Below are positions 6,628-40,160 of a DNA stretch of 64,000 nt, piece by piece; within the stretch, counting starts at the first letter, position 1; each line of letters opens with the position of its first letter. Position numbers and translations under genes: made by a program. This DNA comes from Anaeramoeba ignava BMAN (taxonomy: Eukaryota; Protista; Anaeramoebae): the NCBI GenBank assembly GCA_028826165.1, contig JAPDFW010000076.1, positions 1 to 64,000 on the forward strand. Direction: 5' to 3'. A model generated the notes under the pieces. It saw nothing but the letters and a program-made list of their open reading frames with translations. It searched no databases and had not been told where the DNA came from.

Positions 6628-8240
6628 TTAATCATTCTTTTTTTTTATTAAATCTTTCTTTTCTTTTCCATTTTTTTCTTCTCTTTTTATCATTAAAAAC
6701 CAAAAATCTTCTTTTTTAAATTGATGAAAAACAAAAAAAATCCAAAATAAAACAAAATGAATAAAAGAAACAAATTGAATCAAAGAGATCAAAAAAGTTT
6801 TAAGTTGATGAGAAAAAACTAAAAAATAAATGACTTGATTAAAAAACAAAAACAAAATTGAACTAGCAAATAAAAATTTAGAAAGTGGAAAATGGAAATT
6901 AAAAACAACAATTTTTGCTGAAAGAAGAGCAAAAACAATTAAAGAAAAATAATAAGGGATAACAAGATTCTCAATTAAAACCAAAGGGAAAATTGAATAA
7001 GCAGAAACAATAATAAACCAAAACATAAAAAAACCGATTGCTTGGTCTTGAATTAAGAATGTGGAAATTAATAACGGAATAACAATATCAATTTGGCAAT
7101 GATTTGGAAAAGCAAAAAGAAAGAAAGCAAATGAAGTGTTAAAAAGGGAGAGAATAAAAGATCTTCTAGAAGGTTTTTTTATCACATTATAATTAATCGG
7201 AATTGTAATTAGAAGTGTAATTGCAAAAGAGATTTTCTTCAATGGAATGAGGCTTGATTTGAAATGATCGTTTAAAATAAACCATAGATTTGGTGTTCCT
7301 TTTATGCAAACTTGGGGTTCTTTTTGAAATGAGAATAAATTAAGAATTATTTGCAAAAAGTCTTTGAAAGATCGAATAAAAGGAATCCATAAAATAATAA
7401 GTGTTAAAATAAATATAGAAATTACAAAAAAAACATATTTAATTGCTTCTTTTTTGGCGATTTCTTTCCCTAAAATTAAATAAATAAATAAAAATAAAAA
7501 TAAATAAAAATATTAATTAAATTGGTTTGATCAAAAAAAAAGTTCTCATTTTTTTGAACTGGTCAACCTTTTTGATTTAAATTTGTTGTTTTCACAAAAA
7601 AGGCGTTTCCAATAACAATAGAAAAATAAGGAAGAGCAAAAACCCAAATTCTTGAATCAAAACCTAAAGCCAAAGCGAAAATAAAAGAACTCAATTTATG
7701 ATGATTTTCCATCAGCATAATAAAAGATAAAAGAGATAAAGATAAAGAAACGGAATCGTCTTTAAAATGAGCGTGTTCAATTAACAAAAAAACAGGTTGA
7801 ATACACATTGATAGCCATTGGATAACTTTTTTTTGATCATTTAATTCTTCTTCAACTGCTAAAGCAAAAGTTGGAAAGTAAAAAACAAAATCTGCAATTA
7901 AAATTGTCCATCTCATAAAAATTTTAACATTTGAGTTTCTTTTTCCTTCAAATATTTTTGGATTTATATTTTGAGCCATTTTCCCATTAATCCATGAAAA
8001 ATATGCTTTTAAAGGAGGACAATATTTGACAATATTTTCTTTTGAATTTTGAGGTAATTGAAATTTTGAATACCATTCATTTATTGAAATGTTTTTTGAT
8101 GTTGTAATTTTCATCCATTGTTTGTTTGCATCAAAAAATTCAAAAGAAGATTTATTTGATTCATCGAAATACGGATAAGTTGCAATAAAAATTCTAATTA
8201 AAATTGCTACAATTATTGCATTTAAAGATTTCCAAATCAT
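6628..8240 (-). CDS. ALG6/ALG8-family (GT-C) dolichyl-P-Glc glucosyltransferase-like membrane protein, divergent; exons 8240-7568 and 7469-6628
   Basis: Motif remnants ANKQWMKIT..EWY..PPLKAYFSW..G, KIFMRWTILIAD, LLIEHAHF..SVSL, TPNLW. The GT-AG intron 7567-7470 joins the two ORFs in frame. C-terminal KKKND is a KKxx ER-retrieval motif. Confidence 0.8.
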
Positions 8241-8303
8241 TTTGAAAGAAGAAAAAAATGAATTTTTGATTTTTTTTTTTCATTTTTCATTTCTTTCTTT
8301 TTA

Positions 8304-10694
8304 ATGAATAATATTGTTTTGACTGTTGTAAATAACACAAATTCAAATTTTAAATTAATTTTATATCAATTTTATATCAATTTTATATTAATTTTATATC
8401 AATTTTATATCAATTTTAAATAAATTTTATATTAATTTTAAATCAATTTTATATCAATTTTATATTAATTTTATATTAATTTTATATCAATTTTATATTA
8501 ATTTTATATTAATTTTATATCAATTTTAAATCAATTTTAAATCAATTTTATATCAATTTTAAATTAATTTTAAATCAATTTTTTATATTAATTTTTTATC
8601 AATTTTTAAATCAATTTTATATCAATTTTAAAAATCTTAATTTTATATCAATTTTATATCAATTTTATATCAATTTTATATTAATTTTAAATCAATTTTA
8701 AATCAATTTTTAAATCAATTTTAAATCAATTTTAAATCAATTTTATATCAATTTTTATATCAATTTTAAATTAATTTTATATTAATTTAAAATCAATTTT
8801 AAATCAATTTTAAATCAATTTTAAATCAATTTTATCAATTTTATATTAATTTTTAAATCAATTTTAAATCAATTTTTAAATCAATTTTAAATCAATTTTA
8901 AATCAATTTTAAATCAATTTTATATCAATTTTAAATCAATTTTAAATCAATTTTAAATCAATTTTATATCAATTTTATATCAATTTTAAATCAATTTTAT
9001 ATCAATTTTAAATCAATTTTATATCAATTTTAATTTTAAATCAATTTTAAATCAATTTTAAATCAATTTTATATCAATTTTAAATCAATTTTAAATATTA
9101 ATTTTTTATATCAATTTTAAATCAATTTTATATCAATTTTATATCAATTTTAAATTAATTTTAAATCAATTTTAAATCAATTTTTTAAATCAATTTTTAA
9201 ATCAATTTTAAATCAATTTTAAATCAATTTTATATCAATTTTAAATCAATTTTAAATCAATTTTAAATCAATTTTAAATCAATTTTAAATCAATTTTAAA
9301 TCAATTTTAAATCAATTTTAAATCAATTTTATATCAATTTTAAATCAATTTTAAATCAATTTTAAATCAATTTTAAATCAATTTTATATCAATTTTAAAT
9401 CAATTTTATATCAATTTTATATTAATTTTTAAATCAATTTTAAATCAATTTTATATCAATTTTATATTAATTTTATATCAATTTTAAATCAATTTTAAAT
9501 CAATTTTATATCAATTTTATATCAATTTTAAATCAATTTTAAATCAATTTTTATATCAATTTTATATTAATTTTATATCAATTTTAAATCAATTTTAAAT
9601 CAATTTTAAATCAATTTTAAATCAATTTTATATTAATTTTATATCAATTTTATATCAATTTTATATTAATTTTAAATCAATTTTTAAATCAATTTTATAT
9701 TAATTTTATATTAATTTTATATCAATTTTAAATCAATTTTAAATCAATTTTATATTAATTTTATATCAATTTTATATTAATTTTATATTAATTTTATATA
9801 AATTTTATATTAATTTTAAATCAATTTTAAATCAATTTTATATCAATTTTATATCAATTTTAAATCAATTTTAAATCAATTTTAAATCAATTTTAAATCA
9901 ATTTTAAATCAATTTTAAATCAATTTTAAATCAATTTTAAATCAATTTTAAATCAATTTTAAATCAATTTTAAATCAATTTTATATCAATTTTAAATCAA
10001 TTTTAAATCAATTTTAAATCAATTTTAAATTAATTTTATATCAATTTTAAATCAATTTTAAATCAATTTTAAATCAATTTTAAATCAATTTTAAATCAAT
10101 TTTAATTCAATTTTAAATCAATTTTAAATCAATTTTATATCAATTTTAAATCAATTTTATATTAATTTTATATTAATTTTATATTAATTTTATATTAATT
10201 TTATATTAATTTTATATTTATTAAAGGATGCTGGAGTATTTCGATTCAATAAACAAAATGAACTCGAAGTTCTTGTTATTCAAAGAAAAAAAAACCCTTT
10301 CATTGGTTCATTTGCTTTTTGTGGAGGTCATGTAGAAAAAAATGAAGATCCAAAAGATGCTGTAATTAGAGAATTGAAAGAAGAAACAAATTTAGATGGA
10401 ATAAATCCTATTGTTTTTGATGCTAGAGGTGATTTAAATAGAGATCCTAGAGGTCATTATGTATCAATTTTTTATCATGTTGAATTAAAAGATCCTTCAC
10501 AAGAACCTCAAGGAGGAGATGATGCTGCAAAAGCTCTTTTTGTTCCTCTTACAAAAATTCTTGGAAATGATTTGGAAAATCCTCCTCAAAATCCTCCAAA
10601 CAAAGAATCTTTTCTTCCAATTGCTTTTGATCATTATGAAGCTTTTAAAACTTTTTATCAATGGTTAAAGATTAACAAAAAAATCAAAATTTGA
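8304..10694 (+). CDS. Nudix hydrolase (ADP-ribose pyrophosphatase/NadM-NrtR-like); exons 8304-8327 and 10227-10694
   Basis: Spliced product MNNIVLTV|DAGVF..VLVIQRKKNPFIGSFAFCGGHVEKNEDPKDAVIRELKEETNL (Nudix box), then RDPRGHYVS, GGDDAAKA, AFDH. GT at 8328 and AG at 10225-10226 keep the frame. Confidence 0.9.
8350..10215. repeat. 11-bp satellite (ATCAATTTTAA)n with ATCAATTTTAT/ATTAATTTTAT variants filling the Nudix intron
   Basis: Direct reading of the sequence. Confidence 0.95.
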
Positions 10695-11529: not shown

Positions 11530-17262
<5,733 letters not shown>

Positions 17263-17679
17263 TTTTTTATTAAAATTATTATTAGAATTAGGATTAGATT
17301 TTTAATTAAAAAATTTATTATTTAAATTGATAATGATAATTAAGAAAAAAAAAAATAAAAGAAAAAAAGAAGAAAAATAAAAAAAAAATAAAAAAAAAAT
17401 TTTTATCATTTTTTATAATTTTTAATAATTTTTCATAATTTTTAATCATTTTTTTTTTCAACAATAATTTTACTTTATTTTTAATATAAAATTAACAAAA
17501 ATTAAAATTATTTCTTTTAATTTAGATTATTTTAAGAAATTTTTCCAAAATAAAAAAGAAGAATTCGAAATAAAAAAAAGAAAAAAAAAATAAAAAATGA
17601 ATTTTAAATGAAAAATTTCAAATCATTTTTTTTAATTCTTTTTAAATTTAAATAATTTGGAATTTTGCAATAAAAAGAA

Positions 17680-20600
17680 ATGTATTATCTTTTAAGTTGT
17701 GATCCAACAACAAAAGATGGATATGAATATGTTCATTGGATAAATAAAGTTTTTGGGGACTGTATTTACACTCCAAGAGATATAGTTGCTTTTGCAATAG
17801 GTCTTTCTTCTATTGCTTGTTGGCTGGTCGCACAAGCTCCGTATATTCTTTTTATTATACAAAATTTTTTTCTCATTTTCATTTATTCAATTCTTTAATT
17901 TTTAATTAAAATTTATTTATAAAATTCATTTATAAAATTAAAATTAAAATTAAAATTAAAATTAAAATTAAAATTAAAATTCATTTATAAAATTAAAATT
18001 AAAATTAAAATTAAAATTAAAATTAAAATTAAAATTAAAATTAAAATTAAAATCAAAATTAAAATCAAAATTTAAATCAAAAAATTTAAAATTAAAATTA
18101 AAATTAAAATTAAAATTAAAATTAAAATTAAAATTAAAATTAAAATTAAAATTAAAATTAAAATTAAAATTAAAATTAAAATTAAAATTAAAATTGAAAA
18201 TAAAATCAAAATTAAAATTAAAATTAAAAATTAAAATTCATTTATAAAATTAAAATTTAAAATTAAAATTAAAATTAAAATTAAAATTAAAATTAAAATT
18301 AAAATTAAAATTTAAATCAAAATTAAAATTAAAAATTAAAATTAAAAATTAAAATTAATATTAAAATTCATTTATAAAATTAAAATTGAAAATAAAATTA
18401 AAATTAAAATCAAAATTAAAATTCATTTATAAAATTCATTTATAAAATTAAAATTAATATTAAAATTAAAATTCAAATTAAAATTAAAATTTATTTATAA
18501 AATTTGAATTAAAATTAAAATCAAAATTAAAATTCATTTATGAAATTAAAATTCAAAATAAAATTAAAATTAAAATTCATTTTGATATTTAAAATTAAAA
18601 TTAAAAACAAAATTAAAATTCATTTATAAAATTAAAATTAAAATTAAAATTAAAATTGATTATTAAAATTTGTTTTTTTTAAATTAGTCAATTATATATG
18701 AATTATAAGTTAAAAAGTTCAGATTCTTTAAGTCCAATATTTTTAATTGGTAAATAATTTAAATTTTTTTATCAACAAAAAACAACTTTGTGACTTTTTT
18801 CTCTATCAATTCTCGATTCAACAAACAATCCAAAAATCAAAAAAAAAGGATTTATTAAAATAATTGAATCCAATATTTGGAATACAAATTAACAAACAAA
18901 ACAAGAGAATTGTTCAAAAACAAGAGAAAATTGAAAACACAAAAAAAAAATAAGCAAAATCTAATTCATTAATAAATTTGATCGTTGCTTCATATATTAT
19001 TCAATACCATTTTCTTCCATATTAATTTTTTAGAATGGCTTTTGGGTGATACATTTAATTTAGTCGGTTGTATTTTAACAGGTCAACTTGCTTCTCAAGT
19101 ATTTTGAAATTATATTTAAAATTAAAATTCATTTTGATACTAAAATTAAAATTAAAATTCAAATTAAAATTAAAATTAAAATTAAAATTATATTTAAAAT
19201 TAAAATTCATTTTGATATTTAAAATTAAAATTTATTTTGATATTTAAAATTAAAATTAAAATTAAAATTAAAATTAAAATTCATTTTGATATTGATATTT
19301 AAAATTCAAATTATATTTGAAATTAAAATTAAAATTCAAATTAAAATTAAAATTAAAATTCAAATTAAAATTAAAATTCAAATTAAAATTAAAATTAAAA
19401 TTCAAATTAAAATTAAAATTCAAATTAAAATTAAAATTAAAATTCAAATTAAAATTAAAATTAAAATTAAAATTAAAATTCATTTTGATATTGATATTTA
19501 AAATTTAAATTAAAATTAAAATTAAAATTCATTTTGATACTAAAATTAAAATTAAAATTAAAATTCATTTTGATATTAAAATTATTATATTCTTTTTAAT
19601 AAAAAAGACAGCAACCGCAGTTTATTTTTGTTTAATAGATTTTTTTATGATTACACAATTTATTTATTATCAAGCTCGAAAAAAGAAATTTCATCCAGAA
19701 TTATATCAAAAAAAAGAGGAAGAAGAAAATTTAGAAGATTCAAAACAAGATACAAAATTATTAAGCGATGAAGATGAAAAATCAAAAGAAAAATCAAAAG
19801 AAAAACAAATTGAAAAATTAAACAAAATTTTAAATATAAATGAAAATGAAAATGAAAATGAAAATGAAAATGAAAATGAAAATGAGAATAAAATTGAATC
19901 TAATACTGATACTGAAAAGCAAAAATTATTAATTTTTATCGGTTTAATTGGGTTTTCTTATACTTTTTTTTTACATAATCCTCAACCTCCACAAAGTTTA
20001 AATTCTAGAAAAATTTTATCAATGGTTTGAATATTTAAAAATATTTTTCCAAAAAAATTTTCACTTAAAATTTTTCTAACTGAAAAAAAATTTTATTATT
20101 TGTTTTGAATTATTAAGTCTCATCATTCAAAAGAAGTTTTAGGTAAATTTTAAATTTAAAAAATTTTAAAAAAGCAAAAAAAAAAAATTTATATTTAAAT
20201 TATTTTTTTTTCTTTTAGGAACTGTAATTGGTTGGATTAGTGCAGCTTTTTATTTAGGTTCAAGATTACCACAAATTATCAAAAATTTCCAAAGAGGATC
20301 AACAGAAGGTCTTTCTCTTCAAATGTTTATTGCAGCAGTTTGCGTAAATATTTAATTAATTATTTATAAAAAAAATTTTTTTGAATTCGGAACTTTTTTG
20401 ATTTTTAATTTATTTTTTATTTTTAATTTTTTAATTTTTAATTTTTAATTTTTTAGGGAAATTTAACTTATGCTTTAGGAATTTTTATTCGTTCTGTTGC
20501 TTGGAGTTTTGTTTGGCCAAAGTTTCCTTGGATTGTTGGAAGTGTTGGAACTTTATGTTTTGATTTTACAGTAAAAATTATTTTTTCATTTTCCAAAAAA

Positions 20601-21234: not shown

Positions 21235-24200
21235 TTAAATTGTTTTTCTTTTCTTTAACAAAATTGTTAATTGTCTTTTTGATAAATTTTGAGGAGTTTT
21301 ACATTCTTTAATCACTTTTTTCTTTGATAAAGCTTCATCCTCTTCATTTCCCAATTCAGAATCAGATTCAGATTCAGATTGAGATTGAGTTAAAGTTAAA
21401 AATATTTTTTCAGAATCAAAATTGGTTTTTTTTCTTTTTGATTTTTTTTTGGAAGAATTTTTTCTCAAAATTGAATCATCATTTTCAATTTGATTTTTTA
21501 AGAAATTTTGAAAAGGAATCATTTCATTAACAAAATTGCGAATTTTTTCATCTGATTTTTTTTGAGATAAAAAATCAATTTTAATTTGTTGGAAATCATC
21601 ATCACTTTCAAGACTAATAAATTTATCATTTATTTTTAAATTTCCGTTAAGATTAACGTCAAAAGCTTGTAAAAAATTAAACCAAGGACCGTAATCAATT
21701 GATTCAGAAAGAATATTTGAAAAGAAAAATTCTTCGTTTGTATTTTTGCTTATCAAGTAATAAAAATAAACTGAATGATTTTGTTTTAATCCTAAGCATT
21801 TATTTTCCGCTCGAAGCATTAATTTTGGATTCCAGTTGATTTCTGTAAAAATTACAAGTGTTGCTGAACTTGGAAACATAATCGGTAATTGATTGAGCGA
21901 AATGCTCGCAATTTTTATTGTTTGATCTTCTTCAAATTTTGAAAGTTTTTTTCTTCTTTCTTCCTTTTTTTCTTCTTCAAAAATCACAATGTGTTTTTTT
22001 TGTGAATTTTCTAAATAATTTCTTACTGTTTCTTTTATAATCTCGTTGCTTGTGAAAATTATGCATTTTCTGTTTGGAAAGTTTGATGTTATTTTATCAA
22101 TTAAATTTGGAATATATTTTTTTTTCTGGTTCGAAATTTCATGTGAAAATTGTATTAAATTTTCGTTAAAATGTGGATCAGAAACATCAAGTTGTTTCTG
22201 TTGATTTTCTTCTTTTGTGTTTTCGTTTGTGTTTTCTGTCGTGAAAAAATAAGGAATTCGATAATGAGGTTGTAAATGGTTTTTTCTCTGAATCCAATTT
22301 TTCTCGCCATTTTCTGCAATTATGCAATTTTGTTTCAGAAAATCTTCATATTTTGTTGAATTGAAAAAAAGTGAACTAAAAAGCTCCAAATTTTCATATT
22401 CATTTGGAAACAATAACTCAAATTGTGGGAATAATTTTTCTGCTTCTGTGATTGTTTTTTGATCTGAAAGAACAATTTTGCGAGTTGAATTAGTCAATGT
22501 TTTTTCAATTATTTTCAGTGAATTTCCAACATCAAAAGCTGGCAAATTTGTTCCATCAAAAACAACAAAATGGAAAGAAATCCCATCAAATATTTCTGTT
22601 AATTTTGACGTCGTTTCTTTGTTCAAAATTAATGTTGTTGATAATATTGTGATTGCTTTTGTTTTTTCAAATTGCTCCAGATTGTTTGGGTGAATAAGAA
22701 TATTAATTGATAAATTGGTGTCAAATAAAAGCCAGTTTTCAAAAGCAAGTTCCCAACCAAAACATCTTTTTCTTGAGCAAATGATTAAAATATTTGTGTC
22801 TTTTTCAAAGTGATTTATGATTGACATAATTTGTAATGTATTGTGACCAAGAACACAATCAAAAAAGTAATTTTCTTGTTCTTGAATTGATAAGTCATAA
22901 ACAAAATCATCGTGGTTTTTTGTGATTGATTTTTCTACTTGAATCCAACAATATTTTTTTTCTTTAAATTCTTCTTTTTTCAATTTGGAAATTCCAATTT
23001 TATCGAAATAACTCAAAATACTTTTTTTGTTTGAAATGCAAACATTATATTCTTTTTGATTTGAAAATTTTGATATTTTCTTTTGCTTTTTTGATAAAAT
23101 TCCAAACCCAGCTAATACAAAAATAAATTGTTCAGCAATTTTCCCATTTGGAAATGAAAAATTAATTGATATGAATTCTTTGGCATTTGTATTCTTAGTA
23201 AAAGTGCAAATTGAACCACAAAGCTCAAATAAAATTTGAATAAAGTTGATCATCAGATCAAGCTCTGAAATGAGGAAATTTAATGGAATTTCTTTTTCAT
23301 TTGAGCAAACACCAAACTTATATCCATGATGAATAAGTAAATCAACGTATTCTTTTGATGAAATTTCCACAAAATTTTGATCAATTAATAAATGCGATTT
23401 TTTACAGTTTTGAGAATGGTTTTGTGGATTTTTTGAAGGAAGTAATAATTTGTGGAAATGAAGAACAAAATTTTCTTTTGATTTTTGATTTGGAAAGCTA
23501 AATTGAGATTTAAAATGTTGAATATTTTCCTCAACTGCAAATAAAAAATGATTAACCATTAAGTAAACTAATGATATTTTGGGAAAAGAAGGATTGATTC
23601 GAGAGGAATCCGATATGCTTGAATTTTGGATTTTGTTCCAAAAATTCAACGAGAAAAGTACTTTATCTTTGTTTGAAATTTGGGATGCTCTTTTCCATCC
23701 GTTTGGAGTTAATAGCTTATGTTTGAGGGATGTTTTAAGTGTAATTCCATTTGAAAGGGTTGTTTTTCGAATTTTAAATGTTTTTTCTCGGTAAATTGCT
23801 GTAATTTCTTGGAATTTGATCTGGTTATTTTGGTTGAATGCAAGAATCTTTAAATTCTCTTTTCCTGTTTTCTGGATAGGTTTATACCATTCTCCATTAT
23901 CAAGATCAATAACTTTTGATTTTGAATAAATGAATTGATTAAATAATGTTTGAATGGAAAAAATTCCATAGTTTGTCATCAAAAGAGATTTTCCATGGAT
24001 ACATTTTCCTGGGATAGAATCATCTGCAAGTATTATTTTGCTGTTTTCTTGTGAGATTGCTTTCTCAACTCTTTTTGTTTGTGATGAAGTGAGGAATGTA
24101 CTTAATTTTTCTTGTATTTCTTTTCTTTTTTGGGTTTTGGAGTGGAATTCTGTTATTCTTTTCAATTCTTCATATTCAATTTCTTGGATTTCAATATTTA

Positions 24201-27200
24201 TTTGATTGTTTTGCTGCTGGAAATTTTTAAGAGAATTAAGAATTTGATTATAAATTTGAAAAGAGAATTGGATTGAATTTGGAAATTGGTTTGATCTTTG
24301 TATTTCATATTCTTCCAAAAATGTTTTAATTTGTAATATATCTTCTGAACTTGTCAATTCAATAGTATCCTCATTTTTGATTGAGAAATGAAGAGTAATT
24401 TGGTTTAAATTATTATTACTATTATTTTCAAATGAAGAAATTTGAAGTTGTTTTAATTTTTGGTTTTGAGAATGTAGTTGATTGTTTGTGTGCTCCATTT
24501 CTTGCTGTTTTATATTTGGTTGGTTATTAAGATTTAAGAGGTTTTGGATTCGATTTTGAGAATTATTTAAAAGAGCATGAAAATTTGGGGATATTTGCGA
24601 GTTTTGAGATAAATTTGATGTAATTTTTGGATTAATTTTTTGGTTTAAGTAGATGAATCTAGCCTGCTTTTGAGATTGAGATTCAATTTGATTTATATTT
24701 TGATTTATATTTTGATTTATATCTTGATTTATATTTTGATTTATATTTTGATTTATATTTTCATTGTTTTGATTTATATTTTGATTTATATTTTCATTTA
24801 TATTTTCATTTATATTTTGATTTATATTTTGATTTATATTTTGATTTATATTTTGATTTATATTTTGATTTATATTTTGATTTATATTTTGATTTATATC
24901 TTGATTTATATTTTGATTTATATTTTGATTCATATCTTCATTTATATTTTGATTTATATTTTCATTGTTTTCATTTATATTTTGATTTATATTTTCATTT
25001 ATATTTTCATTTATATTTTCATTTATATTTTTGATTTATATTTTGATTTATATTATTTTATATTTTATATCTTCATTTATATTTTCATTTATATTTTGAT
25101 TTATATTTTGATTTATATTTTGATTTATATTTTGATTTATATTTTGATTTATATTTTCATTTATATTTTGATTTATATTTTGATTTATATTTTGATTTAT
25201 ATTTTGATTTATATTTTCATTTATATTTTGATTTATATCTTCATTTATATTTTCATTTATATTTTGATTTATATCTTCATTTATATTTTGATTTATATTT
25301 TGATTGTTTTCATTTATATTTTGATTTGTGTTTTCATTGTTTTCATTTATGATTTGTATTTGAGATTGATATGGAGATTTATATTGAGAATGATGTTGAG
25401 ATTGATGTTGAGATTGATTTATATTTTGTATTTGAGATTTATTTTGAGATTTATATTGAGTTTTATTTATATTTTGTATTTGAGATTGATGTTGAGATTG
25501 ATGTTGAGATTGATGTTGAGATTGATGTTGAGAATGATGTTGAGATTGATTTATATTTTGTATTTGAGATTGATGTTGAGATTGATGCTGAGATTTATAT
25601 TGAGATTGATGTTGAGATTTATATTGAGTTTTATTTATATTTTGTATTTGGGATTGATATGGAGATTGATGTTGAGATTGATGATAAGATTGATGTTGAG
25701 ATTGATTTATATTTTGTATTTGGGATTTATTTATATTTTGTATTTGGAATGATTCCTCTTTCTGATTCTTATTCAATATTGATGTGTTTTGATTTTCAGA
25801 ATTTAGATTAAATTGATCCATTACATTTTTTTGAGAAGAATTAGAAGTAATTGGGATTAATGGAGTTTTTTGAATATTTAAAGGATTTAGATTATTATTT
25901 ATATTATTATTTAAATTATTATTTATATTATTATTTAGATTATTATTTAGATTATTATTTAGATTATTATTTAGATTATTATTTATATTATTATTTAAAT
26001 TATTATTTAGATTATTATTTAAATTATTATTTAAATTATTATTTAAATTATTATTTAGATTATTAATTATTATTTATATTATTATTTAAATTATTATTTA
26101 TATTATTATTTAGATTATTATTTAAATTATTATTTAGATTATTATTTAAATTATTATTTAGATTATTATTTAGATTATTATTTATATTATTATTTAAATT
26201 ATTATTTATATTATTATTTAGATTATTATTTAGATTATTATTTAGATTATTATTTAGATTATTATTTAGATTATTATTTAAATTATTATTTAGATTATTA
26301 TTTAAATTATTATTTAAATTATTATTTAAATTATTATTTAAATTATTATTTATATTATTATTTAGATTATTATTTATATTATGATTTATATTATTATTGT
26401 TGAAGCTCTTGACAGTTTTCAAATTGCTTAAAGTTGTAATTTTTGGAAAACTTGAAAAACTTGGAAAACTATTAAATTTATTCAAATTATTTTCATTTAA
26501 TTTATTGAATTGATATAATTTTTGATTTTGATTTTGATTTTGATTTTGATTTTGATTTTGATTTTGATTTTGATTTTGATTTTGATTTTGATTTTGATTT
26601 TGATTTTGATTTTGATTTTGATTTTGATTTTGATTTTGATTATTGAATTGATATAATTTTTGATTTTGGTTTTGGTTTTGGTTTAAATGATTTAATTTTA
26701 AAGGTTGATTCAAATTTGGATTGAGTTGATTCAAATTTGGATTGAGTTGATTTAATTTTAAAGGTTGATTTAATTTTAAAGGTTGATTCAAATTTGGATT
26801 GAGCTGATTTAATTTTAAAGGTTGATTTAAATTGGGATTGAGTTGATTTAATTTTAAAGGTTGATTTAAATTTGGATTAAATTGATTTAAATTCAGATTT
26901 AAATTATTTGGATTGAATTGATTTAAATTTAAATTATGTTGAGTAAAATTATATAGTTTTATTTTGTTTTGAGGAAATTTATCAACATTTTGTTGATTAA
27001 CATAATTAGGAAGAGGTTTTATATTATTAGAAAAATTTTGAATAGAAGGAAATAAATTAATTGAAGAAGAATTTGAAGAAAAAGAATTTTCTCCAAATTT
27101 TTCAATAGAATTTTCTTTTGAATCATTATTTATTTTCGATGGAGAATTTTGGAAAGTTGTATTTTGAGTTGAATTTGAATTTTCAATTGGATTTGTATTT

Positions 27201-27379
27201 GAATTTTTATTTTTATTTGAATCTGTATTTGTATTTGAATTTGAATTTGAAAAATTATTTTGAGAAAGAAAATTATTATTTAAAGTATTGCATTGAATTT
27301 GAATATTATAATAACAAGGACTTGATGTAAGTTGATTATTTTGTTCTTTTTGTGTTTTTTTATTTAAAGGATTTTGCAT
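21235..27379 (-). CDS. SMARCAL1/HARP-like SNF2-family protein with a long N/Q-rich N-terminus, degenerate ATPase motifs and an intein; ORFs 27379-26063, 25821-25048 and 24933-21235 are probably one gene broken by indels in repeats
   Basis: HARP-like segment (~24402-24175, QFSFQIYNQILNSLK..INIEI). Motif I ILADD..GK|TLQ; motif Ia LIICS..FGWE..F..WL. C-lobe KCIIFT, ERRKKLSKFEED..IASISL, SATLVIFTEINWNPKLMLRAENKC..QNHSVYFYYLISKNTNEE, matching the SMARCAL1 pattern. Confidence 0.8.
22840..24003 (-). mobile_element. Intein (388 aa) with degenerate LAGLIDADG homing endonuclease, inserted in Walker A of the SNF2-like host
   Basis: Block A CIHGKSLLMTNYG (Cys1 at 24003-24001); block B ITLKTSLKHKLLTPNGWKRASQI; endonuclease remnants VYLMVNHFLFA, KEIP, FIQILFELCGSI, FVLAGFGI, YFDKIG; block F VYDLSI; block G GHN followed by Thr+1. 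Excision restores ILADDSIPGK-TLQ. Confidence 0.95.
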
Positions 27380-28044
27380 TTATTTAATTTAAATATGTTT
27401 AAAAAAAATGAATTAAATTTTTTTAATTTTTTTGTTTTTAAATTTTTAATTTAATTTTTTGTTTTTCAAAAACATTAAAAAAAAGTTTTAAAAAAAAATA
27501 ATTTTTTTTAATTGATCATTTTGAAATTAAAATTTTTAAAATTAAAAACAAAAACAAATTTGAAATTAAAAACAAAAACAAAAACAAATTTTGAAATTAA
27601 AATTAAAATTAAAATTGAAATTAAAAACAAAATTAAATTCAAAATTAAAATTAAAATTAAAATTAAAATTAAAATTAAAATTGAAATTGAAATTAAAATT
27701 GAAATTAAAATTGAAATTAAAATTAAAATTAAAATTAAATTGAAATTAAAATTGAAATTAAAACAAAAACAAAATTAAAATTCATTTATAAAATTAAAAT
27801 TAAAATTAAATTAAAATTTAAAATGAAATTAAAAAAAAATTAAAAAAATTAAAATTATAAAATTAAAATTAAAATTGAAATTGAAAACAAAAACAAATTT
27901 TGAAATTAAAATTTGAAATTGAAATTGAAATTAAAATTGAAATTAAAAACAAAAACAAATTTTGAAATTAAAATTGAAATTAAAATTGTTTAATCATTTA
28001 TTCTTTTTATCTCTAAATAAAATTATAAGAAAAAAATTTTTTTA

Positions 28045-29594: not shown

Positions 29595-31545
29595 CAATAA
29601 AATTAAATCTAAATTAAATTTTAAATTAATTTCCTAATTAATTAATAAATCAAAATTAATTTAATTTTTATATATTTTTATATTTAAATTTATTATTAAA
29701 TTTATTATCATTATTTTTAATTACAAATATTTATTTAATAAAATAAAATTAAATCTAAATTAAATTTTAAATTAATTTCCTAATTAATTAATAAATCAAA
29801 ATTAATTTAAATTTTAATATTTTTATATTTAAATTTATTATTAAATTTATTATCATTATTTTTATTTATAATTATTTATTTAATAAAATGAATTAAATCT
29901 AAATTAAATTTTAAATTAATTTCCTAATTAATTAATGAAATCAAAAATTAATTTAGAGATTTTTATATTTTATATTTAAATTTATTATTAAATTTATTAT
30001 CATTATTTTTAATTATAAATATTTATTTAATAAAATAAAATTAAATCTAAATTAAATTTTAAATTAATTTCATAATTGATTAATAAATCAAAAATTAATT
30101 TAGATATTTATATTTTTATATTTAAATTTATTATTAAATTTATTATCATTATTTTTATTTATAATTATTTATTTAATAAAATAAAATTAAATCTAAATTA
30201 AATTTTAAATTAATTTCCTAATTAATTAATAATTCAAAATTAATTTAATTTTTATATTTTTATATTTAAATTTATTATCATTATTTTTATTTATAAATAT
30301 TTATTTAATAAAATAAAATTAAATCTAAATTAAATTTTAAATTAATTTTCTAACTGATTAATAAATCAAAATTAATTTTAATTTTTATATTTTTATATTT
30401 AAATTTATTATTAAATTTATTATCATTATTTTTATTTATAATTATTTATTTAATAAAATAAAATTAAATCTAAATTAAATTTTAAATTAATTTTTAACTA
30501 ATTAATAAATCAAAATTAATTTAATTTTTAATATTTTTATATTTAAATTTATTATTAAATTTATTATCATTATTTTATTTATAATTATTTATTTAATAAA
30601 AATAAAATTAAATCTAAATTAAATTTTAAAATTAATTTCCTAACTAATTAATAATTCAAAATTAATTTAGATATTTATATTTTATATTTAAATTTATTAT
30701 TAAATTTATTATCATTATTTTTATTTATAATTATTTATTTAATAAAATGGAATTAAATCTAAATTAAATTTTAAATTAATTTCCTAATTAATTAATAAAT
30801 CAAAATTAATTTAATTTTTATATTTTTATATTTAAATTTATTATTAAATTTATTATCATTATTTTTAATTATAAATATTTATTTAATAAAATAAAATTAA
30901 ATCTAAATTAAATTTTAAATTAACAACTAATTAATTAATAAATCAAAATTAATTTATATATTTATATTTTTATATTTAAATTTATTATTAAATTTATTAT
31001 CATTATTTTTAATTATAAATATTTATTTAATAAAAATAAAATTAAATCTAAATTAAATTTTAAATTAATTTCCTAACTAATTAATAAATTCAAAATTAAT
31101 TTAGATATTTATATTTTTATATTTAAATTTATTATTAAATTTATTATCATTATTTTTATTTATAAATATTTATTTAATAAAATAAAATTAAATCTAAATT
31201 AAATTTTAAATTAATTTTGTAATTAATTAATAAATCAAAATTAATTTAATTTTTAATATTTTTATTTAAATTTATTATTAAATTTATTATCATCATTTTT
31301 ATTTATAATTATTTATTTAATAAAATAAAATTAAATATAAATTAAATTTTAAATTAATTTTTTAACTAATTAATAAATCAAAATTAATTTAAATTTTAAT
31401 ATTTTTATATTTAAATTTATTATTAAATTTATTATCATTATTTTAATTATAAATATTTATTTAATAAAATAAAATTAAATCTAAATTAAATTTTAAATTA
31501 ATTTTTTAATTAATTAATAAATCAAAATTAATTTAATTTTTTATA
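29595..31545. repeat. Tandem satellite, ~145-bp monomer, ~14 copies, almost pure A/T
   Basis: Anchor AAATCTAAATTAAATTTTAAATTAA recurs at ~29605, 29751, 29896, 30043, 30189, 30321, 30466, 30610, 30755, 30899, 31044, 31190, 31333 (variant) and 31477. Confidence 0.95.
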
Positions 31546-31550
31546 TTTTT

Positions 31551-31572
31551 TTCATTTTTCATTTTTCATTTT
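31551..31572 (+). promoter_or_regulatory. Tandem TTTTTCATTT initiator-like motif (example; recurs before most genes in the window)
   Basis: Sense-strand TCATTT clusters within about 170 nt upstream of start codons of more than 10 genes; resembles the parabasalid Inr TCA(Y)(T/A). Confidence 0.55.
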
Positions 31573-31601
31573 TTTTAAAATTAATTTAGAAAGAAAAAAA
31601 A

Positions 31602-34265
31602 ATGTTTGAAGAAGAAGATTTAATTCCAAAACCAAAAAAAAATAGAACAAAAAAGAAAAGGAACATTAGAAATTATAAAAAAATAAAAAAACAACAAGAA
31701 GAATTGCCAATATTTGGAGCAAAAGAAACAATAATTGAAAAAATAAAAACAAACGATACAATAATAATAGTAGGAGAAACAGGATGTGGAAAATCAACAC
31801 AAGTTCCACAATATTTATATTCAGCAGGATATTATACAAAATTTTTTGGAAAAAATAAAATTAAACAATCAAAAGAAGAAAATCAAAATCAAAATGAAAT
31901 CCAAATTGAAAATGAAAATCAAAATAAAAATGAAATTCAAAATGAAATTCAAAATCAAATTCAAAATCAAATTCAAATTCAAAATCAAAATCAAATTCAA
32001 AATCAAAATCAAATTCAAAATAAAAATGAAATTCAAATTCAAAATGAAATTCAAAATCAAAATAAAAATCAAAATCAAAATCAAATTCAAATTCAAAAAA
32101 ATCAAAATCAAATTCAAAATGAAAATGAAAATGAAATTCAAAATAAAAATGAAAATGAAATTCAAAATAAAAATGAAAATGAAATTCAAAATCAAATTCA
32201 AAATCAAATTCAAAATAAAAATAAAAATAAAAATAAAAATATAATTGAAAATGAAAAATTCCAAATCTTCCAAAGAAATAAACGCCAAATGATTGGAATA
32301 ACTCAACCAAGAAGAGTTGCTGCAATAACACTCGCCAAAAGAGTTGCAAATGAAATGGGAGTTGAATTTGGAAAAGAAGTAGGATTTGCAATTCGATTTG
32401 AAGACAAAACATCAGCAAATACAGGAATTAAATTTATGACTGATGGATTGTTATTAAGAGAAATATTGCTTGATCCTCTTCTTTGGAATTATTCAGTTAT
32501 TATTATTGATGAAGCACATGAAAGAACAGTTCAAACAGATATATTATTTGGGATGCTTAAAAAAATACAGAAAAAAAGAAATGAAAAAGTAGAAAAAAAC
32601 CAACAAAAAACTAAATTAGAAAAGGATAAATTCAAATCAAACAAATTCGGGAAAAATATTTTAAATGAAAATGAATCAAAATCTCAATACAAACTAATAA
32701 AACTTAAAATTATTATCATGTCTGCCACTTTGGATTCTTGGAAATTTTCGGAGTTTTTTGGAGCACCAGTTTATTATATAGAAGGCAGACAATACCCAGT
32801 CAAAATCATGAACACAATTGAACCCGAAAACGATTACTTGGATGCAGTTTTATTAACAGTAATACAAATACACTTGTGGGAGGAAGAAGGAGATATTTTA
32901 GTATTTTTAACAGGACAAGAAGAAATAGAAATAATGGAGAAATTATTGAAAGAAAAAACAAGTTTATTCCCGTCAGAAACACCTTCTTTAATTATCTACA
33001 AAATTTTTGCCGCGCTCCCAATGGATCAGCAATTGCTGGTTTTCAATAGAGCGCCTAAGGGAAGTCGCAAGGTCACACTTGCAACAAATATTGCCGAGAC
33101 TTCAATCACACTGAATGGGATCCGGTATGTGGTTGATCCAGGGCTCGTCAAGCAGCGGTTATTCAACGCAAAAACAGGGATGGAAACACTTGCGGTTGTT
33201 CCTATTTCCAAAGCGTCTGCATGGCAACGTGCTGGGCGTGCAGGAAGAGAAAAACCAGGAATCTGTTTCCGTCTTTTTACAGAATCTGCCTTTGACGAAC
33301 TGGATGAACAAACAATACCTGAGATCATCCGCGCAAATATTTCAAGCGTGGTTCTTCAACTCAAAGCAATGCATGTTGAGAATGTCCTCGCATTTGATTT
33401 TCTTGATGCGCCGGATGTTGACTCATTGCGTTTTGCCTTGAAATTGTTGTACTCGCTGCATGCATTGAATCCCGACATGAGTCTCACTTCCCATGGGAAT
33501 CTCCTTGCGATGTTCCCGTTGGATCCACGCCTATCTTCCGCCTTGGTGAAGTCAATTGAGTTGGATTGTTTCCATGAAGTTGTCAGTCTTGTCTCGATTC
33601 TTTCGGTTGAGTCTCTTTTATACACACCTTCCCATAATAGAATCAAGGCCAAAAAATCTATTATGAATTTTCATCATGAGTTGGGTGACCATTTTACTTA
33701 TCTCAATATATATTATTCTTTTCTTATGGAGAAGAAAAAGTCAAGAAAAAATTCTATTATTTGGTGTAAAGAAAATTTTGTTAATTTTCGATCTTTGGAA
33801 CAAGTTTCCAAAATTTCTCAACAGCTCATTCAGTATTGCATTCAAGCTAAACTTATCCCACAAAACTTTCTTAGTCTTGAACATCTCACCCACAACGCAA
33901 ATGTTTCAGAGTCTGTTATTGATCTCGTTTTCAAACAATCCATGCGCTCAAAACAACAAGAAGAGCGCATCCAAAAATCAATGATTTCAGGCTTTTTTAT
34001 GAATGTTGCCCAAAGACAATCGGATGGGAAATACAGGTGCTTTTTAAATAATGAGACCGTTTCCATTCATCCCTCTTCTGTTCTTGCAAACTCTAAGCCT
34101 GATTGTGTTTTGTTTCATGAGTTGATCACAACTTCCCATCCTTATATCCGTGATTTGCTAATTGTTCAACAACCTTGGCTTTCTGAAATTGCTCCTCGTT
34201 TTTATTCATCTCAAAACACATTACCAATTCCTCGAAATTCTGTTCAAAATGTTGATTTTTTTTAG
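31602..34265 (+). CDS. DEAH-box RNA helicase, DHX33-like (Prp16/22/43 superfamily), intronless
   Basis: GETGCGKSTQ, TQPRRVAA, TDGLLLRE, DEAHER, SAT, EGRQYPV, FLTGQEEIE, ATNIAETSIT, QRAGRAGR, plus HA2/OB regions. Confidence 0.93.
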   Translation: MFEEEDLIPKPKKNRTKKKRNIRNYKKIKKQQEELPIFGAKETIIEKIKTNDTIIIVGETGCGKSTQVPQYLYSAGYYTKFFGKNKIKQSKEENQNQNEIQIENENQNKNEIQNEIQNQIQNQIQIQNQNQIQNQNQIQNKNEIQIQNEIQNQNKNQNQNQIQIQKNQNQIQNENENEIQNKNENEIQNKNENEIQNQIQNQIQNKNKNKNKNIIENEKFQIFQRNKRQMIGITQPRRVAAITLAKRVANEMGVEFGKEVGFAIRFEDKTSANTGIKFMTDGLLLREILLDPLLWNYSVIIIDEAHERTVQTDILFGMLKKIQKKRNEKVEKNQQKTKLEKDKFKSNKFGKNILNENESKSQYKLIKLKIIIMSATLDSWKFSEFFGAPVYYIEGRQYPVKIMNTIEPENDYLDAVLLTVIQIHLWEEEGDILVFLTGQEEIEIMEKLLKEKTSLFPSETPSLIIYKIFAALPMDQQLLVFNRAPKGSRKVTLATNIAETSITLNGIRYVVDPGLVKQRLFNAKTGMETLAVVPISKASAWQRAGRAGREKPGICFRLFTESAFDELDEQTIPEIIRANISSVVLQLKAMHVENVLAFDFLDAPDVDSLRFALKLLYSLHALNPDMSLTSHGNLLAMFPLDPRLSSALVKSIELDCFHEVVSLVSILSVESLLYTPSHNRIKAKKSIMNFHHELGDHFTYLNIYYSFLMEKKKSRKNSIIWCKENFVNFRSLEQVSKISQQLIQYCIQAKLIPQNFLSLEHLTHNANVSESVIDLVFKQSMRSKQQEERIQKSMISGFFMNVAQRQSDGKYRCFLNNETVSIHPSSVLANSKPDCVLFHELITTSHPYIRDLLIVQQPWLSEIAPRFYSSQNTLPIPRNSVQNVDFF

Positions 34266-35667: not shown

Positions 35668-38600
35668 TCAAACTTTCTCGACATAATTTCCAGGAAAAGC
35701 ACCTTCTTGACCATTTGAATTTTTACCGATATACCAACCAGCATCCTCAGAAATAACAGTTAAAAACTCACCAGCAACCAAAGAAAGTTCGCCTTCTGCT
35801 TGAGCTTCATAATCATAAAGAGCCTGAACTTGTTCTCCTGATAATTGGGTTGATTGCTGGGAATAATCCTGTTGATCCGCATTGTCTCCACCGCCTGAAT
35901 CGACGAAGTTTGAAGGGAATAATCCTGTTCGATTTCCAATTGAGCCTTCCCACCATCCTCCGTCGTGTTTATTTGTTACTGTGATCACTTCTCCTGCTGA
36001 GAAACTTAAATCGTTTTCTCCTTCTCCATCGTAATCGTATAGTGCTGTTACTTGATCTCCTGTTGTTGAATAACTTGTTTTTGGTGCTGAATAACTTGTT
36101 GTTTTTGTTTCGCTAAATCCTCCTCCATAACTTGTCTTTTTTTTTTTTTCAATCCAAATTTTTATTAAATTTATTTATAAATTATTATTAAAATTATTAT
36201 TAAATTGTTTATAAATTTATTTATAAAATTATTTATAAATTTGATTATAAATTTGTTTATTAAATTTTTATTAAAATTATTTATTAAATTTATATTAAAA
36301 TTATTTATAAATTATTATTAAATTTATTTATAAATTTTTTTATAAATTATTATTAAATTTGTTTATAAATTTGTTTATAAATTATTTATAAATTTATTTA
36401 TAAATTTGTTTATAATTTTGTTTATAAATTTGTTTATAAATTTGTTTATAAATTTGTTCATAAATTTATATTAAATTTGTTTTATAAATTTGTTTATAAA
36501 ATTGTTTATAAAATTGTTTATAATTTTGTTTATAAATTTGTTTATAAATTTGTTTTATAAATTATTAATAAATTTATTTATAAATTTATTATTAAATTTA
36601 TATTAAAAATTATTTATAAATTTGTTCATTAATTTGTTTTTAATTTGTTTATAAATTTGTTTATAAATTTGTTTATAAAATTTGTTTATAAATTTATTTA
36701 TAATTTATTATTAAATTTATATTAAAATTATTATTAAATTTATTTATAAATTATTATTAAATTTGTTTATTAATTTGTTTATAAATTTGTTTATAAATTT
36801 GTTTATAAATTATTATTAAATTTGTTTATAAATTTGTTCATTAATTTGTTTATTAATTTGTTTATAAATTTGTTTATAAATTTGTTTATAGATTTGTTTT
36901 TAAATTATTATTAAATTTGTTTATAAATTTTTTTATAAATTTGTTTATAAATTTGTTTATAAATTTGTTTATAAATTTGTTTATAAATTTGTTTATAAAT
37001 TTGTTTATAAATTTGTTTATAAATTATTATTAAATTTGTTTATAAATTTGTTTATAAATTTGTTTATAAATTATTATTAAATTTATTTATAAATTTGTTT
37101 ATAAATTTATTTATAAATTTATTATTAAATTTTTTTATAAATTTTTTTATAAATTTTTATTTATTTACGGTATTAGAACTTGTGTTTGGATTTGAATTTC
37201 CTGTTCTGTTTTCATTAATAATTGCTTTAATATCACTATCAGCATCAATTTGTTCAAATGAATCACTTAATTTTTGAAATGCTTGTTGAGTAGTTGAAAC
37301 AAATCCGGTTACATGATAAGAAGCAAGTGCTTTAAATTGTGTTTTAAGTTTGTTCACTCTTTGTTCTTCTAATCTTTGAAATTCCTGATTTGATTTTGGA
37401 ATTGATTTTGGAATTGATTTTGGAATTGATTTTGGAATTGATTTTGGAATTGATTTTGGAATTGATTTAAAATTGATTTAAAATTGATTTAAAATTGATT
37501 TAAAATTGATATAAAATTGATTTAAAATTGAATTGATTTTGGAATTAAATTGATTTTGGAATTGAATTAAAATTGATTTAAAATTGATTTAAAATTGATT
37601 TAAAATTGATTTAAAATTGATTTAAAATTGAATCTTATACATCAAGAATTGAAGGAACAACATTTCGAAGAAAATCTTGTTCAGATGATTCAAAAGCACT
37701 TTGAGCTTTAGAAACATCATCATCAAGTTTTGATTTAGTTTTTGTTAGTTTTTCAAGTTTTCCTTGTGCCTATAAAATCAATAATTTTCCATTTAATTTT
37801 TAAATTTTTAATTTTTAATTTTTAATTTTTAATTTTTAATTTTTAATTTTTAATTTTTAATTTTTAATTTTTAATTTTTAAATTTTAATTTTTACTCGAT
37901 TATCTCCTCCTTGAACAGAAGAATTAAGATTATCAACATCAGATTTTATTTTCATTGACTTTTTTGTTAACTATTTTAATATTAATAAAAATTTTAATTT
38001 AAAAAAAAAAACTAAATTTTTTTTGGAAAAATTAATAATAAATACATTTTCAAATTTTCCTTTTAAATTCTTCACTTCTTTTGCTTTTTTATCACAAGAA
38101 GAAAGGATCTTTAAAAATTGATTTTAATTTTAATTTTAATTTTAATTTTAATTTTAATTTTAATTTTAATTTTAATTTTAATTTTAATTTTAATTTTAAT
38201 TTTAATTTTAATTTAATTTTAATTTTAATTTTAATTTTAATATTAATTTTAATTTTAATTTTAATTTTAATTTTAATTTTAATTTTAATTTTAATTTTAA
38301 TTTTAATTTTAATTTTAATTTTAATTTTAATTTTAATTTTAATATTAATTTTAATTTTAATTTTAATTTTAATTTTAAATTGGATTTTTACTTCTTTTCT
38401 TATTGGAGAAGTTTCGTTTTTAAAATCAATAATAGGTTTTGCAAAATCTTCCATAATTTTTGTTGCAGTTTCTAAATGAAGTTGACCTATTGTATCAAAT
38501 TGCCTTAAAAGAGTATCCCATGCTTCTTTAACAGTTCTAAATAAAAATATAAATATAAATATAAATATAAATATAAATATATAAATATATATATAAATAT

Positions 38601-39860
38601 AAATATAATTGTAAATATAATTGTAAATATAATTGTAAATATAAATATAAATATAAATATAAATATAAATATAAATATAAATATAAATATAAATATAAAT
38701 ATAAATATAAATATAAATATAAATATAAATATAAATATAAATATAAATATAAATATAAATATAAATATAAATATAAATATAAATATAAATATAAATATAA
38801 AATAAAAATAAAATAAATATAAAATATAAATATAAATATAAAAAAAAATATAAATATAAATATAAATATAAAAATATAAATATAAAAATATAAATATAAA
38901 ATATAAAATAAAAATATAAACATAAAAATAATAAAATAATAAACGTAAAAATAAATAAAATAAATATAAATATAAAAATAAAAAATAAATATAAATAAAA
39001 ATATAAATATAAATATAATATAAACATAAAATAAAATATAATATAAATATAAATATAAATATAAATATAAATATAAATATAAATATAAATATAAATATAA
39101 ATATAAATATAAATATAAGTAAATATAAATATAAATATAAATAAAATATAAAAATATAACATAAATATAAAATAAAATATGAAATAAATATAAATATAAA
39201 TATAAATATAAATATAAAAATATAAATAAATAAAAAAAAAATATAAAATATAAATATAAATATAAAATATAAATATATAATATAAATTATAAATATAAAA
39301 TATAAATAAATATAAATATAAATATAAATATAAATATAAATATAAATATAAATATAAAATATAAAAATAAAATGTAAAATAAAGCTAAATGTAAATATAA
39401 ATATAAAATATAAATTATAAATATAAATATAAAAAAAAATATAAAATATAAAAATATAAAATAAATGTAAATATAAATATAAATATAAAATATAAATTAT
39501 AAAAAATATAAATATAAAAATAAAAAATAAAATAAAACATAAAATATAAAAATAAATGTAAATATAAAATATAAATATAAAATATAAATATAAATGTAAA
39601 TGTAAATATAAATATAAATATAATTATAAATATAAATATAAATATAAATGTAAAATATAAATGTAAAATGTAAATTACCCAACACAACGTTCACCAACTT
39701 TTGTTCCATGAACTAATTTTGTAAGTGATCGACCAAAAAATTCTTGTGTTTTTGCAATTTTTTGTAGAAATTCTGACATTTCTCGAAGATCGTGAAAGTC
39801 ATTTGTTACTCTTTCTCTTACTGCATCATAACAATCCCATAAATCAGTTCTAAAACTCAT
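35668..39860 (-). CDS. F-BAR protein with two C-terminal SH3 domains (PSTPIP/Bzz1-like), about 7 exons
   Basis: N-terminal [31 protein letters not shown] (FCH); [11 protein letters not shown]3-1 [28 protein letters not shown]; SH3-2 [23 protein letters not shown]. Confidence 0.88.
36160..37160. repeat. 12-bp satellite (TTTATAAATTTG)n in an F-BAR intron
   Basis: Direct reading of the sequence. Confidence 0.9.
38540..39675. repeat. (ATATAA)n satellite in F-BAR intron 1
   Basis: Direct reading; source of the YI/YL spurious ORFs. Confidence 0.92.
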
Positions 39861-40160
39861 TTTTGTTGAATTTAAAAAAGAATTAAATGAAAAAAAAAGA
39901 AAAAAATGAAAAAATTTTTTTGATTTGGAAAAAAAAATTTAATTTAAAAAAAAAAGCAAATTTCTTCCTTTTTTTTTTCTATTTTCCGTTTTTTTTAAAA
40001 TTTAAAAATTATTAATGAAGTGATAATTTATCACAAAAATCATATTTATTTGATAATTCCTTCAATTGGAACAAAAAAAAAAAAAGAATTAAAATCAAAT
40101 TATTTTTTTTTTGATCAATAAAATTTGAAAAATAAAAAATGTTTCTGTTTTTTTTTTCTT

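Follow-up and report, generated by a model that had tools for sequence, protein, structure and literature searches.

In a 64,000-nucleotide stretch of Anaeramoeba ignava BMAN DNA (contig JAPDFW010000076.1, positions 1 to 64,000; hereafter the window), a minus-strand gene for a protein of SMARCAL1/HARP descent is interrupted by an intein in motif I, the Walker A motif. A sibling intein occupies the same P-loop site in a second gene of the same genome, on a contig here called C39. One host is a conserved enzyme and the other a paralog that looks catalytically stripped, and the inteins within them appear to have evolved at an equal pace. Judged by its conserved positions, the window intein has evolved no faster than its C39 sibling, and the window copy of the host has decayed around an intein whose splicing residues are intact.

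The presence of an intein in a SMARCAL1-type gene of Anaeramoeba is of an already known kind (PMC10710043). On its own, a nuclear intein of this type would repeat the published result, and what is added here is comparative. The decoupled conservation of intein and host is the sole point that may be new, in that the 2023 catalogue of Anaeramoeba inteins possibly does not make it. The explanation that we favour as a whole, and consider likely, combines a class-1 intein, translation and splicing of its precursor, a host that is a pseudo-ATPase paralog, and the duplication of a gene in which the endonuclease of the intein was already dead.

The intein and its place in the precursor

The precursor frame runs for 1232 codons without a stop. 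Each of the other five frames has 65-112, and the plus-strand frame is full of them. The DNA of the open reading frame (ORF) has 25% G+C, that of the whole window 17%. At the first junction the protein reads ...ILADDSIPGK and then CIHGKSLLMT..., and at the second ...VLGHN and then TLQIMS.... When the unspliced precursor is aligned with intein-free SMARCAL1 proteins, the intein appears as a single gap, with ...GK aligned to ...GLGK and TLQ to T(I/L)Q, and the host sequence is colinear with SMARCAL1 on both sides of the junction. The initial annotation of this DNA had described 388 in-frame residues at 22840-24003, from Cys1 to a His-Asn followed by Thr at +1, whose removal would rebuild motif I of the host. 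These coordinates are exact, the strand, which had not been named, is the minus strand, and the continuity of the alignment across the gap bears out the rebuilt motif. The block B His (TSLKH, intein residues 91-95), the block F sequence VYDL (368-371) and the terminal His-Asn (387-388) all lie where they had been placed. A look-up of the exact precursor sequence matched no record.

Profiles, single residues and the predicted structure agree on the nature of the insert. The Pfam model Intein_splicing (PF14890) matches it with 48.2 bits (gathering cut-off 35.8, E 1.3e-12), and TIGR01445, which describes the N-terminal region of inteins, scores 21.3, slightly short of the 24.5 required. Models in NCBIfam that describe intein-containing proteins align with the insert via their intein parts, and the best matches in a sequence search of the PDB are DnaB mini-inteins. 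Across 12 related inteins, 13 alignment columns are invariant (C1, W39, H95, T99, W103, D113, F254, L297, Y369, D370, N378, H387 and N388), and all of these residues are present in the window intein. The codon of the invariant Cys1 is tgt, at 24001-24003. Within the TxxH of block B, His95 alone is conserved; the Thr position is occupied by Ser92 in the window intein and by Gly in the C39 intein. The Asp of block F is Asp370 in VYDL, and the C-terminal end is formed by His387-Asn388, followed by Thr699 of the host. An AlphaFold (AF2) model of the intein, built on the 12-sequence alignment (pLDDT 70.4, pTM 0.72), was compared with known structures by Foldseek. The best match is the TliVMA intein (E 7.8e-18, TM 0.67/0.71), followed by PhoVMA, PI-PfuI, PI-SceI and many mini-inteins, and nearly all of the top 45 matches are inteins or LAGLIDADG proteins. 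With PF14890 above its cut-off, the canonical splicing residues complete and inteins as structural neighbours, the class-1 signature and the Hint-domain match that had been proposed are upheld. Profiles and predicted fold thus identify the insert as a genuine class-1 intein at the GK/T of motif I in a protein descended from SMARCAL1/HARP.

The window intein is predicted to be splicing-competent. Its 388 residues would be translated within the 1232-residue precursor, and excision would start with an N-S acyl shift at Cys1. Thr699, the +1 residue, would then receive the N-extein through transesterification, Asn388 would cyclise with the assistance of His387 and so release the intein, and the exteins would be ligated to give ...SIPGK-TLQIMS....

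The precursor protein would never be made if the 1164-base segment were an intron removed at the RNA level, or an artefact of assembly or insertion, and to either, for which no support was found, we assign a next to negligible probability. The borders of the segment are aaa/tgt and aat/aca (...gga aaa/tgt atc... and ...cac aat/aca tta...), and the 3' border is without AG, on which ground an RNA intron was rejected. The segment is also an open frame of 388 codons that encodes a Hint fold and has the full set of splicing residues, and its G+C content of 26%, in the range of the exteins (22-26%), stands against 8% in the introns of the species, which are 91.9% A+T (PMC11550330). An artefact is contradicted by independent contigs that span both junctions. 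A look for public runs yielded no RNA run and a single run that holds this DNA, of unrecorded kind and made up of contigs. Its contigs at 21735-22902 and 23102-24711 cross the intein junctions uninterrupted, and among the contigs of that one run there is no joint at the intein ends. The single joint that was reported connects 21450 with 24259. It is supported on one side by 21 letters, in a gene rich in repeats, lies off the intein borders and was dismissed as an artefact. At position 24094, in the coding region of the N-extein, a contig of the run reads A and the window G (depth 13), which reflects either strain or allelic variation or an error of polishing.

The endonuclease part of the intein is degenerate. 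LAGLIDADG_3 (PF14528) reaches 19.6 bits where 22.5 are required; in related inteins, which carry IAEG-type and DAEG/DADG-type motifs, it scores 30-68 bits. Of the profile matches foreseen in the initial annotation, that to Intein_splicing was found above its cut-off, that to LAGLIDADG_3 only as the sub-cut-off trace of a remnant. In both the window and the C39 intein, motif 1 has kept a Glu, the catalytic position in motif 2 is taken by Cys, and the same ~90 residues that related inteins have after motif 2 are absent. With the acid of motif 2 gone and these ~90 residues missing, an intact two-motif LAGLIDADG core is not present. The model of the window intein resembles endonuclease-bearing inteins despite this reduction, and its endonuclease part is of low confidence in several loops. 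The homing endonuclease looks dead in both copies, and the intein would now be immobile.

Two SMARCAL1-type hosts in one genome

Searches of the genome (42.8 Mb in 147 contigs) lead from both parts of the precursor to the same locus. The window intein has one relative, at C39:26729-27907 (37% identity, E 5e-36), and the C-extein has its sole match at C39:27908-29524 (25% identity, E 1.6e-16), directly downstream of the C39 intein. The colinearity of the two precursors begins at the HARP-like region, includes the intein and extends to lobe 2 (BLASTP E 2e-87). In the C39 protein, Pfam recognizes SNF2-rel_dom with 111 bits and Helicase_C with 48 bits, and the N-extein matches a SMARCAL1 profile that runs from HARP to motif I (99.2% probability, E 1e-19). 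The best database matches of this protein, at ~40% identity, are animal SMARCAL1 proteins (E 1e-84); among the named matches listed, most are SMARCAL1, usually with a HARP domain, and a few are ZRANB3. By these matches, the C39 gene is the canonical SMARCAL1 of the genome. Its product has long low-complexity extensions at both termini, with NSN/QEFKNN and KLEN/QN repeats. An ORF upstream of it (L005:1903-3012) has the same repeats and may be part of the C39 gene.

A profile of the intein lineage, run against the genome, gives beyond the pair a next match of only E 3e-7. As the genome holds no further close intein, the window and C39 inteins form a small group of their own, and for the same reason their membership in the published 'cluster 1' of inteins hopping between P-loops within the genome is unlikely. 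Weak matches to the profile (E 3e-7 to 7e-3) occur within long open frames of about a dozen further contigs, including C35:264187-264795, C71:176938-177621, C106:81379-81858 and C76:197502-198698, and are presumably other inteins of the genome.

Sequence comparison identifies the host of the window intein as a fast-evolving, lineage-specific paralog of the SMARCAL1/HARP annealing-helicase gene. Its C-extein appears to be a degenerate two-lobe core of the SNF2 type, followed by a Lys/Ser/Glu-rich tail, and matches vertebrate SMARCAL1 over 407 residues (BLASTP E 3e-16) in an alignment that begins at T+1. The N-extein matches the HARP/N-extein region of C39 (BLASTP E 2e-8). A SMARCAL1 HARP profile finds in the N-extein only its own last 34 columns, which are the Q-motif stretch (E 0.013). 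Pfam finds neither the SNF2 domain (PF00176) nor the HARP domain in the window precursor, and scores Helicase_C on the C-extein at 15-18 bits (cut-off 23.5). An AF2 model of the C-extein core, built on a SMARCAL1 alignment, matches SNF2 ATPases (Foldseek 5e-16). A quick maximum-likelihood tree joins the window copy to C39 (SH-aLRT 66.7), on the side of SMARCAL1 and ZRANB3; the end branch of the window copy measures 7.73 substitutions per site, compared with 1.17 for C39 and a median of 0.58. A word-indexed protein search with the C-extein, which was swamped by low-complexity words, returned one weak match, P0001, which the tree groups with a SMARCAL1-type protein. The same kind of search with the intein region returned no match from a collection that apparently holds no Anaeramoeba proteins, so this blank means little. 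The precursor begins with ~80 residues of NINQ-type low-complexity hexapeptide repeats (24700-24933, minus strand).

The catalytic motifs of the window protein have largely been replaced. GLGKT of SMARCAL1 motif I has become IPGKT, with the first Gly of GxGKT lost; DESH of motif II and SGTP of motif III have become DGTN and SDQK, and FAHH of motif IV has become FTSN. Of 68 columns that do not vary among ten SMARCAL1 proteins (of animals, plants, and amoebozoan and other protists), the window copy retains 24 (35%) and C39 retains 59. The loss of the DExH Glu, of motif III, of the motif VI Arg and of the first Gly of GxGKT makes the window protein a probable pseudo-ATPase, one that keeps the fold but does not hydrolyse ATP. 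The earlier assignment to a SMARCAL1/HARP-type host thus stands as far as descent is concerned, given the sole genome match on C39 and the similarity to vertebrate SMARCAL1, but does not extend to a working enzyme. Nor is the window gene the SMARCAL1 of the genome, since the canonical gene is that on C39, which has its own intein at the same site.

Unequal conservation and the origin of the pair

With respect to ten outgroup inteins, the window and C39 inteins are equally conserved, with identities of 24.3% and 22.5% and with 32 and 33 of 66 conserved columns kept. The C-exteins are not: identity to the outgroups is 19.4% for the window copy and 40.5% for C39, and of 137 conserved columns (>=80%) the former keeps 44 and the latter 113. 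These figures suggest that splicing of the window intein is still under selection. Equal conservation of the inteins, together with the open frame, would imply that excision is selected and that the spliced protein is still useful, and selection for splicing is to be expected, since a 45-kDa insert left in place within lobe 1 would destroy any remaining structural or binding role. We tentatively propose, as a serious possibility somewhat short of probable, that the window gene encodes an ancient SMARCAL1 paralog without ATPase activity, and that its intein has been preserved better than the enzyme around it. If so, the demands of splicing, and not those of ATP binding, would have maintained Thr+1 and perhaps the Gly-Lys at -2/-1. 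As Thr699 is needed as the splicing nucleophile regardless of ATP binding, a 'restored GKT' is poor evidence that the Walker A motif works.

Several observations weigh against the explanation favoured as a whole. The P-loop retains Lys310 and Thr699, and the loss of ATPase activity is read from motifs. The SNF2 fold of the C-extein model leans on the SMARCAL1-dominated alignment on which the model was built. In the tree, the sister pairing of the window copy and C39 is weakly supported, and the very long branch of the window copy makes its placement unsure. Finally, the window and C39 inteins are more alike (35-37% identity) than the exteins (25-29%), which would also fit a later transfer of the intein between the paralogs.

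Duplication of an intein-bearing gene appears to be the most likely origin of the pair. A SMARCAL1 gene that already bore an intein with a disabled endonuclease would have duplicated to give the window and C39 copies, and the window copy would afterwards have lost most of the catalytic residues of its SNF2 motor. The ~90-residue gap and the motif 2 Cys that the two inteins have in common make the duplication of a gene with an already immobile intein the simplest account. Movement of the intein between the SMARCAL1 paralogs after duplication, by homing or by gene conversion into the conserved P-loop, is possible but needs more assumptions, and we regard it as unlikely. It would account for the closer similarity of the inteins, which by part amounts to 43% in the N-terminal and 49% in the C-terminal splicing part and to 37% in the endonuclease part, and transfer between paralogs and from P-loop to P-loop has been described for Anaeramoeba (PMC10710043). 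However, had the endonuclease been active at the time of transfer, the common gap and Cys would require two identical later losses, and the asymmetry of the exteins, with 19% (window) and 40% (C39) identity to the outgroups, is enough to explain why these differ more. The identity between the inteins is moreover close to the mean ortholog identity between two Anaeramoeba species (37.3%), so that any transfer would have to be old.

It is also conceivable that the window copy is merely a decaying duplicate, a young pseudogene in which splicing is no longer selected and whatever is still intact, the intein residues and the reading frame, is residual. The disappearance of most catalytic residues of the host, and of SNF2 and HARP domains that Pfam could recognize, would be in line with such decay, as would the failure of a search to turn up expression data. 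Nevertheless, we consider it improbable, more so than a transfer, because 1232 codons have stayed open in DNA of 25% G+C in which every other frame is closed many times over. Given the deep divergence of the exteins from C39, neutral decay would have closed the frame long ago. The predicted secondary structure is still two-lobe, and the intein keeps as many conserved columns as that of C39.

If the window gene is indeed an ATPase-dead paralog whose intein is better preserved than its host, it would be a natural case of an intein outliving the catalytic function at its insertion site, and would bear on the idea that inteins persist through their location in indispensable active sites. The pair can be regarded as a natural experiment on intein persistence, in which the requirement of the host fold for exact excision is set against the catalytic importance of the site. 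A splicing requirement, here for Thr+1, can make a Walker A motif look conserved. This is a caution for annotators, as a GKT regained upon removal of an intein is no proof of an active host ATPase.

Related inteins and genomic surroundings

A total of 103 inteins has been reported for Anaeramoeba ignava BMAN, including five in Prp8 and three in dynein (Gallot-Lavallee et al. 2023, PNAS, PMC10710043). [quoted passage not shown] The initial annotation had left it undecided whether the insertion site was already catalogued; the Anaeramoeba HARP/SMARCAL1 intein is indeed published, and inteins that follow the GK of SNF2 helicases are present in public protein sets. The published intein, whose canonical copy is here the one of C39, is homologous to the window intein, lies at the same GK/T site of motif I and has the same endonuclease remnant. 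The difference is in the host, which in the window is a second, highly diverged paralog without the SNF2 catalytic motifs.

A profile-free search of 1.84 billion representative proteins gave 61 matches to the window intein, the best with E 1e-9 and ~30% identity. In 16 of 18 inspected matches the aligned intein begins directly after the G-K of the P-loop, and several read ...ADEMGLGK/C... in hosts with SNF2-rel_dom and Helicase_C. All ten relatives that were aligned are inserted after GK and end in HN, followed by Thr or Ser at +1. The best sequence relatives (E 1e-9 to 1e-4) are P-loop inteins of public SF2/SNF2 proteins, mostly metagenomic (for example P0122, P0123, P0134, P0141 and P0177), with the same site, ...GLGK/C...HN/T or S. 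Their identity to the window intein is only 20-27%; most have LAGLIDADG_3 well above cut-off, together with DAEG/DADG motifs and a length greater by ~90 residues, and their hosts are not of the SMARCAL1 type. Among inteins of known structure, TliVMA/PhoVMA (7qsu, 7qss, 7qst), PI-PfuI (1dq3) and PI-SceI (1vde) consist, like the window intein, of a Hint domain with an inserted LAGLIDADG-type domain (Foldseek 7.8e-18 to 2e-7, TM up to 0.71). They have 10-16% identity to it and reside in other hosts and at other insertion sites, and in contrast to them the window intein is without one catalytic acid. On the side of the host, the window protein appears colinear in domain order with SMARCAL1/HARP and ZRANB3, from a HARP-like region and a Q-motif region through motif I to lobes 1 and 2, but lacks the residues for ATP hydrolysis and coupling. 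The features of both loci are collected in Table 1.

Table 1. Features of the window precursor and of the C39 gene (window positions unless a contig or locus is given).
Feature	Position	Strand	Basis
Precursor ORF (N-extein, intein, C-extein), 1232 aa + stop	21235-24933	minus	
N-extein, aa 1-310	24004-24933	minus	translation
HARP-like region, aa 179-238	24220-24399	minus	BLASTP against C39
Degenerate Q-motif region	24055-24087	minus	alignment
Motif I, first half, ILADDSIPGK	24004-24033	minus	translation
Intein, 388 aa, Cys1 to Asn388 (precursor residues 311-698)	22840-24003	minus	profile and structure matches
N-terminal splicing region, ~aa 1-120, with Cys1 and block B His95 (TSLKH, 23719-23733)	23644-24003	minus	invariant residues
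Degenerate LAGLIDADG remnant, ~aa 121-345	22969-23643	minus	PF14528 below cut-off, alignment with relatives
LAGLIDADG motif 1, FLFAVEEN, Glu kept (E158/E159)	23524-23547	minus	alignment
LAGLIDADG motif 2, ILFELCGS, Cys262 at the catalytic Asp/Glu position of relatives	23212-23235	minus	alignment
C-terminal splicing region, ~aa 346-388, with block F VYDL (22891-22902) and block G VLGHN (22840-22854)	22840-22968	minus	invariant residues
C-extein, aa 699-1232, first residue the +1 nucleophile Thr699 (TLQIMS)	21238-22839	minus	pairwise alignments
Motif II remnant VVFDGTN (SMARCAL1 DESH), catalytic Glu to Gly794, His to Asn796	22546-22566	minus	alignment
Motif III remnant VLSDQK (SMARCAL1 LLSGTP)	22456-22473	minus	alignment
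Motif VI remnant RAENKCLGLKQ (SMARCAL1 QAEDRAHRIGQ), both arginines lost	21781-21813	minus	alignment
C39 SMARCAL1/HARP gene, 1643 aa	C39:24980-29911 (L005:2981-7912)	plus	ORF
C39 intein, 393 aa, same GK/T site	L005:4730-5908	plus	alignment

The genome of A. ignava is 80.65% A+T, and the assembly of A. flamelloides is ~six-fold larger (PMC11550330). The neighbouring ORFs are eukaryotic, in agreement with the nuclear context that had been assumed for the precursor gene. A bacterial or symbiont gene was rejected in view of these neighbours (a neurobeachin-type WD40 protein, a DEAH/HA2/OB helicase, and PH and ankyrin proteins) and of the 17% G+C. On the plus strand, 4590-5600 encodes the neurobeachin-type WD40 propeller, 52642-53925 a protein with PH and ankyrin domains, and 54043-55419 an ankyrin-repeat protein. 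The plus-strand ORF at 31602-34265 (887 aa) encodes the DEAH-type helicase, with Helicase_C, HA2 and OB_NTP_bind, and sits where the G+C content of the window is highest (33%); no intein is found in it by Pfam at E <= 0.001. The long ORFs at 1447-2745, 26063-27379, 38092-39162 and 60648-62114 have no Pfam match. On the strand opposite to the precursor, 24670-25752 can be read as a 360-residue 'ORF' with a TTG start, and GC skew is strong at 24001-28000; both probably reflect repeats like the NINQ-type ones of the precursor rather than a gene. Intergenic G+C falls to just 7-10% at 8001-10000, 16001-18000, 30001-32000 and 38001-40000, which is extreme for the genome, and some of these segments are strongly GC-skewed.

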